A program made the translations under genes and the position numbers. A stretch of DNA of 63,156 nucleotides, filler included, from Olpidium bornovanus S191 (taxonomy: Eukaryota; Fungi; Olpidiomycota): NCBI GenBank assembly GCA_017911155.1. It is 27 parts of 27 records of this genome, joined end to end, with 100 filler letters (N's around TTAATTAATTAA, not from the genome) between each part and the next. Parts side by side here need not be neighbours in the genome. Positions count along the whole stretch, not along the records: positions 24,145 to 25,584 come from JAEFCI010007008.1; positions 25,685 to 27,117 come from JAEFCI010004836.1; 25 more parts are not named here. The stretch is one strand, 5' to 3'. The notes beneath the pieces are model-generated. The model was not told where the DNA came from. It saw only the letters and a list, made by a program, of their open reading frames with translations, and searched no databases. Shown piece after piece: positions 24,746 through 27,335 of the stretch. Position 1 is the stretch's first letter. Each line of letters begins with the position of its first letter.

Positions 24746-25807
24746 AGAGAGAGAGAGAGAGAGCAGAAAGAGAAAGAGAGCAGAAAGAGAAAGAGAGCGA
24801 AGACCGCTCGGGGCCAAAACCCGTAGACTTTTTTCGCATCTAGATTTTATTTATTTATTTATATATTCGTTTTCTTTTTTTTTTAATTTTTCCCGGCGGC
24901 TTTTACGCTCTCCTCCCCCCGACAAGCTCAAAACGCGCCCTTCTCCCACCCCGTTCTCGCCCTTTTATTGGTTGAGAGCACCCCGCAGAACGCGTTTCTT
25001 CGGCCTTCTCCGAGGTCTTCGTTTCTGTATACACCGCGCATGTCCCGCTCGGGTGGCCCCGCCGATGTCTCCGTAAATACATAAAAATTTTCCCGAACGA
25101 AGGAGAGAAGCCAAAAGGAAAAAAAAAAAAAAAAACCCCCCAACGTGTTCTCGTGGACGGCTTTCGCCCCCCCCCCCGGCCGAGCGCGGCTCGCGGCCCC
25201 GGTTCGGAGACGCGGGGACCCCCGGTCAGGCCAAGAAGAGAGCTCAAGCAGGAAGGGAAAAGGGGCCGTGCCAAGAAAGAGCGGCGCGGGCCTCGTGAAC
25301 GCCTCGCGTGCTCTGCTTTTGGTATCTGGCTCCCGTGGCTTTCCTGGTTCCAGATTCGTCCCATTCTCCGTCGTCGAACTCCCCTCCGGCGAAGGTTCTT
25401 CGAGACTTACAAGAAAAACCAAGTCTTGGTGTTTAACATCTCAACAATAAATCATTTTTTCTGCATGGCGCGCAATATCGACTCTTTCGCCTAATTATAA
25501 CATCAACATCCATCCCAAACGGTATCTTAATTCCGACTCCGAGAGACAGAACTAACAAGAGGGAGTTACTAATAAGGATCGAAGNNNNNNNNNNNNNNNN
25601 NNNNNNNNNNNNNNNNNNNNNNNNNNNNTTAATTAATTAANNNNNNNNNNNNNNNNNNNNNNNNNNNNNNNNNNNNNNNNNNNNCATGAAAATTACTTTT
25701 CTTCCCAAGCCTAGCATTGTCAAAGAGGCAATGGACCTGTCAACACGCATTTCCCGTCACGTCCAATGGCCGAAATCACGTCCAGCAGATTTGTTGCGCA
25801 TCAAAAG

Positions 25808-25881
25808 TGGGCCGATGGAGGGTCGAACTCGGGACCTTCCTTATCCCAGGGGGATGCTCTAACCAACTGAGCTATCTGTCC
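25808..25881 (-). ncRNA. tRNA-like Pol III cassette in the TRIM 3' LTR (loop CTGGGAT, degenerate stems)
   Basis: GGACAGATAGCTCAGTTGGTTAGAGC...GAGTTCGACCC...TCGGCCCA with A-box, B-box and a following CTTTTG. Confidence 0.8.
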
Positions 25882-26040
25882 TATTCACTAGGTGTCTGGC
25901 TCGCCCTGCGAAGCCATTCTAACACCCCCCCTCGAGCCAGGCACTTCAGGCACTGCTGTCAATGGGGATCGGCCACCTGCGCAACTATAACCGGAGAGAC
26001 TAAGTCACAATTGGGCTCATAAGCTGTTGCACATCAAAAG

Positions 26041-26114
26041 TGGGCCGACCAAAGGTCAAACTCGGGACTTTCCCTATCTCGGAGGGACGCTCTAACCAAC
26101 TGAGCAATCTGCCC
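26041..26114 (-). ncRNA. tRNA-like Pol III cassette in the TRIM 5' LTR (loop CCGAGAT)
   Basis: D stem GCTC/GAGC and anticodon stem TCCCT/AGGGA pair perfectly. The B-box is mutated (GAGTTTGACC). Confidence 0.8.
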
Positions 26115-26205
26115 TATTCACCAGGTGTCTGGCTCGCCCTGTGAAGCAATTTTAACAGGATTTATGCCAACTTGCCCTCCGCGGCATAATAAGCCCGGTA
26201 AGCCC

Positions 26206-26860
26206 TGTTGAAGTTGAATTTATGGTGGAGTTCTGTTTTGGTCTGAACCCCTCAATGTTGTACTACTCCTATAACGCGTAGATTCCCCTTTCTTGAATAA
26301 AGTCGCCCCGCGGCGAAACACATAACTTAACAGGATATGAGCCCAACTCGGACCTGACCGCTCCCGCAGCGCCGCCCCGCCGCTGGCCGACGCTTCGCCA
26401 TTGGCATCGTTGACGCTTCGCCTCCGGCACCGTTGACGCTCCGCCCCCAGGCACCGTCGACGCTTCGCCCCTCGGCACCGTCGGCGCTTTGCCCCCGGCA
26501 TCGCTGCTCGCCGCTGCCGCCACTGCGCCGTCCGCCGTCGCGGCAGGGCCCCAACGGACTCTGACGGCTGACCCCCGCTCGGCCGCCGCCGCCGCGTTCG
26601 CCGCCGTTTTTGCCGCTGCCGCCATTTTCGCCGCCGCTTTCGCTGCGCCGCTTACTCTGCGGTCTTTCCCGCCGCCGCCGCCCTCTGTCCGACGCTTCGC
26701 TTTCGCCGTCCGACGCTTCGCTTTCGCCGTCCACGCGTCGCCTTCGCACTGTCCGACGCTTCGCTCCCCGTTCGGCGCGTCGTAGGCATCTGTGGCTGGT
26801 CCTCGTCTGATTCTTCTTCCACGGCCGTCCCCTGCAGCGCCGCGGCAGCCTTGGCCCGGG
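26206..26860 (+). mobile_element. Copia-type 5' LTR (26206-26332, 127 bp), half-tRNA-iMet PBS (26333-26344) and GC-rich leader with 21-bp tandem repeats
   Basis: TGTTGAAG...CTTAACA is immediately followed by GGATATGAGCCC, a 1-nt variant of GGTTATGAGCCC. Arrays of GGCACCGTCGACGCTTCGCCC and GTCCGACGCTTCGCTTTCGCC follow. Confidence 0.75.
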
Positions 26861-27335
26861 GCCCTCGAACCGGCCTGCTCTGCGTAATACTTCCCCCTTC
26901 GGTTTCTTTCTCACGATCCCTGCCCGTACGCCGCTCCTCTTCTCGGGGTCCGAACCGTTGGTTTTTTTGTTGTTGTTGTGTATTTTCGCCGTGTCGTAGT
27001 GGAAGGGAGGAGTGGCTTCCGGGAGCTATTCTATGTGTGTGGCATGTGATACTTTGACGCGCCCTCTTGGATCGAGTGTGAACATTGGGAAAGTTTGGAG
27101 AATGAGCGCAAGGGGTANNNNNNNNNNNNNNNNNNNNNNNNNNNNNNNNNNNNNNNNNNNNTTAATTAATTAANNNNNNNNNNNNNNNNNNNNNNNNNNN
27201 NNNNNNNNNNNNNNNNNATTCCGTTACCAAGCACAATAGCCAAAAATAGTTTGAATGGCCGTGGCGTTGTAATCCACAAAATGGCACGCCACAGTGCGCT
27301 CCAAATGCTGTCCAGGAACCCCCCGGTGTGTCCCC

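Follow-up and report, generated by a model that had tools for sequence, protein, structure and literature searches.

A probable Helenus-type miniature retroelement with tRNA-derived sequence in its long terminal repeats, on a contig assigned to the fungus Olpidium bornovanus

Helenus elements are TRIMs (terminal-repeat retrotransposons in miniature) that carry tRNA-derived sequence in their long terminal repeats (LTRs), and they have been grouped with Cassandra and Ajax as TRIMp3 (Kojima 2024, Biology 13:119, PMC10886601); a literature search found no other paper that uses TRIMp3 in this sense. Fungal Helenus families have target site duplications (TSDs) of 5 bp, as plant Helenus does, together with conserved boxes A and B, partners in the Copia superfamily, and lengths of 311 to 1263 bp (PMC10886601). 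Their LTRs start with tgttg or tgtta and end in aaca or aata, and short T runs come after the tRNA-like part, which sits close to the 3' end; most of these tRNA parts are not functional tRNAs, and the function of the promoter for RNA polymerase III (Pol III) is unvalidated for Helenus as a whole (PMC10886601). The dominant primer type in fungal Helenus is the anticodon loop of initiator tRNA-Met (tRNA-iMet). In Data S1 of the same paper, 49 Helenus internal parts contain TATGAGCCC, and those displayed start with ggttatgagccc and end in a G-run, for example ...acggggggg or ...gcaaggggggg (PMC10886601). The fungal hosts reported are Pucciniales and three Agaricomycetes, all of them basidiomycetes (PMC10886601). 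The element described here lies at positions 25792–26157, on the minus strand, of a window of 63,156 nt that joins records of the O. bornovanus S191 genome end to end, and all positions below count along that window. Its features indicate, with good confidence, a full-length, old and inactive Helenus/TRIMp3 copy, which would be non-autonomous, mobilised by Copia machinery through half-tRNA-iMet priming, and perhaps a Pol III template. This was also the central claim of an earlier note on this DNA, and it fits both every structural feature tested and the published fungal Helenus elements.

The piece of the window in question, 25685–27117, is the entire 1433-bp contig JAEFCI010004836.1 of assembly GCA_017911155.1, whose record reads 'MAG: Olpidium bornovanus'. 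A repeat search and alignment found one strong direct repeat in this piece, at 25792–25924 and 26025–26157. The two copies of 133 nt align without a gap, are 86.5% identical and have a period of 233 nt, and the similarity breaks off precisely at both repeat ends. A base-by-base count gave 18 differences, comprising 15 transitions and 3 transversions, so that the approximate figures of the earlier note (two ungapped 133-bp LTRs, about 18 substitutions, about 15 of them transitions) proved exact. On the minus strand each repeat starts with TGTTA/TGTTAG, holds a tRNA-like part at LTR positions 44–117, and closes with CTTTTGATG(T/C)GCAACA. The 5' LTR is the right-hand copy (26025–26157, minus strand; TGTTAAAATTG...GATGTGCAACA) and the 3' LTR the left-hand one (25792–25924, minus strand; TGTTAGAATGG...GATGCGCAACA).

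Between the LTRs lies a non-coding internal part, or core, of 100 nt, running from 26024 down to 25925 on the minus strand. Its 5' start, GCTTATGAGCCC, adjoins the 5' LTR as a primer binding site (PBS; 26013–26024, minus strand), and its 3' end, GAGGGGGGG, adjoins the 3' LTR as a polypurine tract (PPT; 25925–25933, minus strand). The whole element measures 366 bp and has no capacity to code for protein, as open stretches on its sense strand reach 38 codons at most. It is flanked by AGATT on the left (25787–25791) and GGATT on the right (26158–26162), both read on the plus strand; these match at four of five bases, the mismatch is a transition, and a match of at least 4/5 has a chance probability of P = 0.016. 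The TSD evidence comes from a single locus, and a 4/5 match fits an element with 15% LTR divergence. The locus thus presents the structural features of Helenus, namely short TG..CA LTRs with a tRNA-derived part, a PBS, a PPT, an absence of coding sequence and a 5-bp TSD, and its termini, core and flanks are as the earlier note had described them.

Two copies at a 233-nt period on one contig could also have arisen without a transposon, by local tandem duplication of a 233-bp segment containing a tRNA pseudogene, which would leave a 1.6-unit repeat; that the other copies are known without their DNA leaves some room for such an origin. The repeat ends, however, fall exactly on TG..CA, an 11/12 PBS adjoins one repeat and a G-rich purine tract the other, and four of five flanking bases are duplicated. 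The joint chance of TG..CA ends, of a PBS of at least 11/12 and nine purines at fixed places, and of a TSD of at least 4/5 is approximately 3e-13. A diverged copy of LTR and core is moreover present on another contig, and the architecture is identical to that of published Helenus elements. Tandem duplication is accordingly an exceedingly improbable origin for the locus and is effectively refuted.

A single transversion (G2 to C) separates the PBS from GGTTATGAGCCC, which is complementary to the anticodon stem-loop of tRNA-iMet, and the PBS matches the Helenus family start ggttatgagccc at 11 of 12 positions. The earlier note had regarded this type of primer as unreported for the class, which is incorrect, as tRNA-iMet's anticodon loop is the dominant primer in fungal Helenus (PMC10886601).

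Further copies were sought by translation. A 101-aa open reading frame (ORF) covering the left LTR and the core was compared with 1.84 billion representative proteins in a full HMMER scan, which returned the contig's own gene model and one further protein (P0002; E = 2.6e-14). This protein, KAG5457985.1 (BJ554DRAFT_1885), is also from O. bornovanus and is encoded on a separate contig of 3047 bp. By tblastn, its residues 1–63 align without gaps to 25962–26150, the PBS-side core and right LTR (78%, E = 4e-34), and residues 22–68 align to 25792–25932, which covers the left LTR and the PPT's C-run (77%, E = 9e-24). The second locus therefore appears to hold an LTR with core on both sides, PBS-side on one and PPT-side on the other, as expected of an LTR-core-LTR-core array; a spliced gene model would also be compatible with the alignments. 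The protein was back-translated parsimoniously, so that the difference counts are minima: at least 13 and at least 16 of 133 sites differ from the two LTRs, and at least 5 of 63 from the core. Its PBS residues (G-L-I-T) back-translate to exactly GGTTATGAGCCC. Because it differs from both LTRs and from the core, and has the canonical PBS, P0002 represents an independent copy, and the element is therefore repeated in the assembly. The same back-translation identifies GCTTATGAGCCC as a mutated form of the canonical PBS. The further genomic copies for which the earlier note had proposed a search are thus represented by one, on another contig and seen as protein.

Other searches returned chance matches only. 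Two further proteins in the scan, P0003 and P0004 (E of about 1e-3), are Cys-rich repeat proteins of unrelated origin and were rejected as chance. Pseudo-protein scans gave 21 pattern matches in viral contigs and 394 in metagenome contigs, of which none was confirmed in either set. The 17-mer TCGGCCCACTTTTGATG had 57 matches in metagenome contigs, the number expected by chance, and none extended past about 20 nt by BLASTN; the 19-mer CAGGGCGAGCCAGACACCT had one chance match in genome contigs, in a metagenome-assembled genome of Bacteriovoracaceae, and none in viral contigs.

The tRNA-like part reads in the sense orientation, on the strand that runs from PBS to PPT. In the 3' LTR it occupies 25808–25881 (minus strand) and is recognised by the Rfam tRNA model RF00005 with 31.7 bits against a gathering threshold of 29 (E = 2.4e-4); it forms 16 of 21 cloverleaf pairs and has GGG at the anticodon position. 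With the consensus applied (box A, TRGCY..YGG; box B, GGTTC), box A reads TAGCTCAGTTGG at about 25863–25874 and box B GAGTTCGACCC at about 25820–25830, both on the minus strand. In the 5' LTR the corresponding part (26041–26114, minus strand) is recognised by its cloverleaf pairing and by ARAGORN at 90% only. It forms 20 of 21 pairs, with GAG at the anticodon position and C33; its box A is TTGCTCAGTTGG, altered at position 9, and its box B has decayed to GAGTTTGACC, with the T-loop TTTGACC. Directly after the tRNA-like part stands a run of four T residues (CTTTTG), at 25803–25806 in the 3' LTR and at 26036–26039 in the 5' LTR, both on the minus strand; the former is a candidate Pol III stop and would form the 3' end of the R region. 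Rfam matches to SNORD26 (18.5 against 44 bits), snoU82P (12.4 against 42) and mir-9847 (13.4 against 74) lay far below their thresholds and were rejected as chance.

At default settings ARAGORN called no tRNA in either LTR, and at 90% thresholds it called both. When the LTR was reconstructed with G or C as the older state at each transition, the resulting sequence passed ARAGORN at default, so the ancestral LTR held a better tRNA-like unit and the decay came after insertion. The negative default call, an A5.G68 mismatch in the acceptor stem and C33 in the 5' copy all speak against a functional tRNA gene, and a class-I tRNA body here bears the anticodons GAG and GGG; the unit is degenerate sequence of tRNA origin and not credible as a functional tRNA. 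The earlier note had described a 74-nt tRNA cloverleaf in each LTR. The tRNA layout at LTR positions 44–117 was borne out, and an intact cloverleaf or tRNA gene was not, with Rfam recognising one LTR only and ARAGORN at default neither. Both LTRs carry the A5.G68 mismatch, a state that the back-translated third copy would also allow, and it probably goes back to the family's founder. As a speculation, it might shield the template RNA from processing by RNase P and RNase Z.

The two LTRs differ by 13.5% (Kimura two-parameter (K2P) distance 0.154). Seven of the 15 transitions fall in CpG context, although CpG accounts for only about 16% of C+G positions, and because of this concentration the decay looks like deamination of methylated cytosines in an old insertion. 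The copy at 25792–26157 is probably dead and no longer active, since its LTRs are 15% diverged and mutations have hit both box B of the 5' LTR and the PBS at its second base.

From the published family and the biology of LTR retrotransposons, the following cycle can be proposed. Reverse transcriptase and integrase would be supplied in trans by a Copia-superfamily element. A 3'-truncated tRNA-iMet would pair with the PBS through its anticodon stem-loop GGGCUCAUAACC and prime the minus strand, the PPT would prime the plus strand, and integration would produce the 5-bp duplication. More tentatively, Pol III may initiate on the tRNA-like unit of the 5' LTR, pass the T4 run there and terminate at or beyond the T4 run of the 3' LTR, which would yield a transcript of about 310 nt. 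In such a transcript the tRNA-like unit might act as R, U3 being the opening 43 nt of the LTR and U5 roughly its closing 11 nt. On the sense strand, T runs of at least four occur only at LTR positions 119–122 of each LTR, and T4 is a weak Pol III terminator in fungi (yeast). With mutations in box B of the 5' LTR and in the PBS, this copy would now be poor at the proposed cycle.

The same element might instead be transcribed by RNA polymerase II (Pol II), as ordinary TRIMs are, from a short U3 or by read-through from a neighbour, with the tRNA-like part an inert remnant of a tRNA or of a short interspersed nuclear element (SINE) that had inserted into an ancestral LTR. Some Pol III transcripts would end before the PBS, at the T4 run that succeeds the tRNA-like part in the 5' LTR, and it is the 5' copy of that part that fails Rfam; the unvalidated state of the Helenus Pol III promoter (PMC10886601) also leaves room for Pol II. 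The LTR, however, has just 43 nt before and 16 nt after the tRNA-like part, so there is little room for a Pol II promoter, an R region and a poly(A) signal, and no AATAAA or TATA is visible in it. Further sense-strand T runs of four or more are absent, and boxes A and B, conserved among Helenus families (PMC10886601), are present in the reconstructed LTR. Pol II transcription is therefore considered quite unlikely. Pol III template synthesis is in any case best regarded as a question for the whole TRIMp3 class, which a decayed copy such as this one could hardly settle.

Several observations weigh against the identification as a Copia-mobilised, Pol III-transcribed Helenus copy. The 5' LTR, which is the presumed promoter copy, has no Rfam tRNA match even when searched alone. 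The T4 run is equally weak in both LTRs and so leaves the RNA without a defined 3' end. Complementarity of the PBS was judged from the Helenus family consensus and from the general conservation of the initiator anticodon arm in eukaryotes, not from the host's own tRNA-iMet. Two loci are known, the second solely through a 68-aa gene model. Finally, no Copia polyprotein of this assembly turned up, the assembly not having been searched by DNA.

A further question concerns the host. The O. bornovanus assembly was obtained from non-axenic zoospores from cucumber roots and binned by tetramer composition, with 29 Mb retained of a raw assembly of 187 Mb, and the Dikarya with most matches in the raw data were Coprinopsis cinerea and Ustilago hordei (PMC7865070). 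The contig carries a single annotated gene, BJ554DRAFT_7210, an ab initio model of 68 aa at 25731–26022 on the plus strand, antisense to the element, whose GT..AG 'intron' (25807–25891) excises the tRNA-like part of the left LTR nearly exactly. This 'hypothetical protein' and that of BJ554DRAFT_1885 are annotation artefacts, translations of the repeat. No real gene was recognised on the contig; none of 10 ORFs of the piece, looked up exactly in the protein collection, was found there. Because the contig is 1.4 kb long, has no real gene and belongs to a metagenome bin, its Olpidium label is not secure; the earlier note had guessed at an Olpidium-like host, in keeping with the record label, which is itself the product of metagenome binning.

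The element could thus be a genuine Helenus while its contig belongs to some other fungus present in the non-axenic material, such as a basidiomycete, in which case the extension of the host range would be a binning error. Both the severity of the binning and the prominence of the two Dikarya in the raw data (PMC7865070) are compatible with this, as is the short contig without a real gene. Among the six published families compared, the tRNA-like part (copy B) was nearest to that of Helenus-1_AmAr, a family of an agaricomycete, at 56/74, against 46–54 over about 72 nt for the five others. A match of 56/74 is, however, ordinary for tRNA-derived sequences, for which reason a special kinship with Helenus-1_AmAr was rejected, and the rest of the LTR and core shares no 12–14-mers with published Helenus elements. 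Two separate contigs with the family also survived the depositors' binning and similarity filters, and no related sequence was found in the metagenomes of the Joint Genome Institute (JGI). A foreign origin of the contig is unlikely on balance, though it carries more weight than Pol II transcription of the element.

Some 50 nt beyond the element's right end lies a second LTR-like unit of 127 nt (26206–26332, plus strand), with boundaries drawn from its termini: terminal inverted repeats of 9–10 nt (TGTTGAAGTT/AACTTAACA) enclose TATAAC and AATAAA. It is directly followed by a PBS-like sequence of the tRNA-iMet-half type, GGATATGAGCCCAA (26333–26346, plus strand). The junction AACAGGATATGAGCCCAA matches that of the element, AACAGCTTATGAGCCCAA, at 16 of 18 positions; the two lie about 170 nt apart on opposite strands, their local alignment score of 26 compares with a maximum of 25 in 300 shuffles, and weaker similarity (inverted repeat I1) runs about 20 nt past the junction. 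With a second junction of the same type nearby, elements with a tRNA-iMet-half primer are present in this genome. No 3' LTR for this unit was found within the piece, and the 785 nt that follow, GC-rich tandem repeats with the first plus-strand ATG at 27033, show no coding region. Its sequence resembles the 5' end of a conventional element of Pol II type with the same primer. The unit could be related to the partner family of the TRIM, and nothing marks it as autonomous.

The right flank of the element, GGATTTATGCC (26152–26168), resembles the neighbouring PBS-like sequence GGATATGAGCC (26327–26343), with TTAACAGGAT as a common 10-mer. About one chance coincidence of a 10-mer is expected in a piece of this size; as alternatives to chance, the sharing could reflect target preference or an older nested structure. 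Further to the right, 26350–26930 forms a block of 66–78% G+C with imperfect tandem units of 24 nt (26388–26500, 4.8 copies), 30 nt (26582–26678) and 21 nt (26687–26765). Long ORFs in this GC-rich right half, for example one of 195 aa on the minus strand, were rejected as genes, because its composition leaves all six frames largely open.

Olpidiomycota is absent from the host list (Table 1) of Kojima 2024 (PMC10886601), and the earlier note's statement that the class was unreported in such a host therefore holds. What is new here may be the host lineage only, and it depends on the metagenomic bin. If the contig is truly from Olpidium, this would be the first Helenus/TRIMp3 family outside Dikarya, a reading with slightly better than even chances, and the partnership of an iMet-primed Copia element with a Pol III TRIM would be ancient or recurrent. 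The host would then be a zoosporic lineage branching next to the terrestrial fungi, carrying the same pairing as the rust elements of a tRNA-like Pol III unit in the LTR with a half-tRNA-iMet primer. Either the Copia/TRIM partnership would be far older than the approximately 130 million years proposed for Pucciniales, or it would arise repeatedly and predictably where such Copia elements and tRNA-derived SINEs coexist. The element opens no new mechanism; it adds to a class described in 2024 a host lineage and a family without sequence similarity to the published ones. In practical terms, Helenus-type elements inflate tRNA gene counts and seed false gene models, as BJ554DRAFT_7210 and BJ554DRAFT_1885 illustrate, and they can flag active Copia elements that use an unusual tRNA primer produced by internal cleavage.

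In architecture the element is nearest to Helenus-1/1B_HemVas of Hemileia vastatrix. Helenus-1_HemVas has an LTR of 116 nt, a core of 79 nt, a total length of 311 nt and a 5-bp TSD (PMC10886601), against 133, 100 and 366 nt and likewise 5 bp here, and 366 nt falls within the range of 311–1263. As in fungal Helenus, the LTRs run from TGTT to AACA with boxes A and B near the LTR 3' end and then a short T run, and the non-coding core opens with (G)GTTATGAGCCC and closes on a G-run; as in most Helenus, the anticodon and the body of the tRNA disagree. Unlike published Helenus, the LTR and core share no 12–14-mers with any consensus outside the tRNA-like part, and for this reason the element is judged from its sequence to be a separate, new family within the known Helenus class. 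Both junctions on JAEFCI010004836.1 continue with CCCAA where rust Helenus has CCCAG, and this copy departs from the PBS of the Helenus family by its G2 to C change.

The likeness extends to other systems. With Cassandra of plants, which carries 5S rRNA in its LTRs, and Ajax of nemerteans, which has a 5S promoter, the element shares a TRIM LTR containing a fragment of a Pol III small-RNA gene and the same proposed logic, in which an internal Pol III promoter would yield the template RNA; unlike in these, the small RNA is tRNA-derived and not 5S, and the partner of Cassandra is unknown. As in Drosophila copia and yeast Ty5, the PBS complements the anticodon stem-loop of initiator tRNA-Met and implies a 3'-truncated primer (cited in PMC10886601), but those elements are autonomous, several kb long and transcribed by Pol II, whereas the element described here encodes nothing and must borrow its enzymes. 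With tRNA-derived SINEs (SINE2) it has in common that a short interspersed repeat without coding sequence carries a Pol III promoter of tRNA origin, and insertion of a SINE2 into an ancestral TRIM LTR is the probable source of its tRNA-like part. SINEs differ in having no LTR, PBS or PPT and in being moved by non-LTR retrotransposons, the enzymes of long interspersed nuclear elements (LINEs) recognising their tail.

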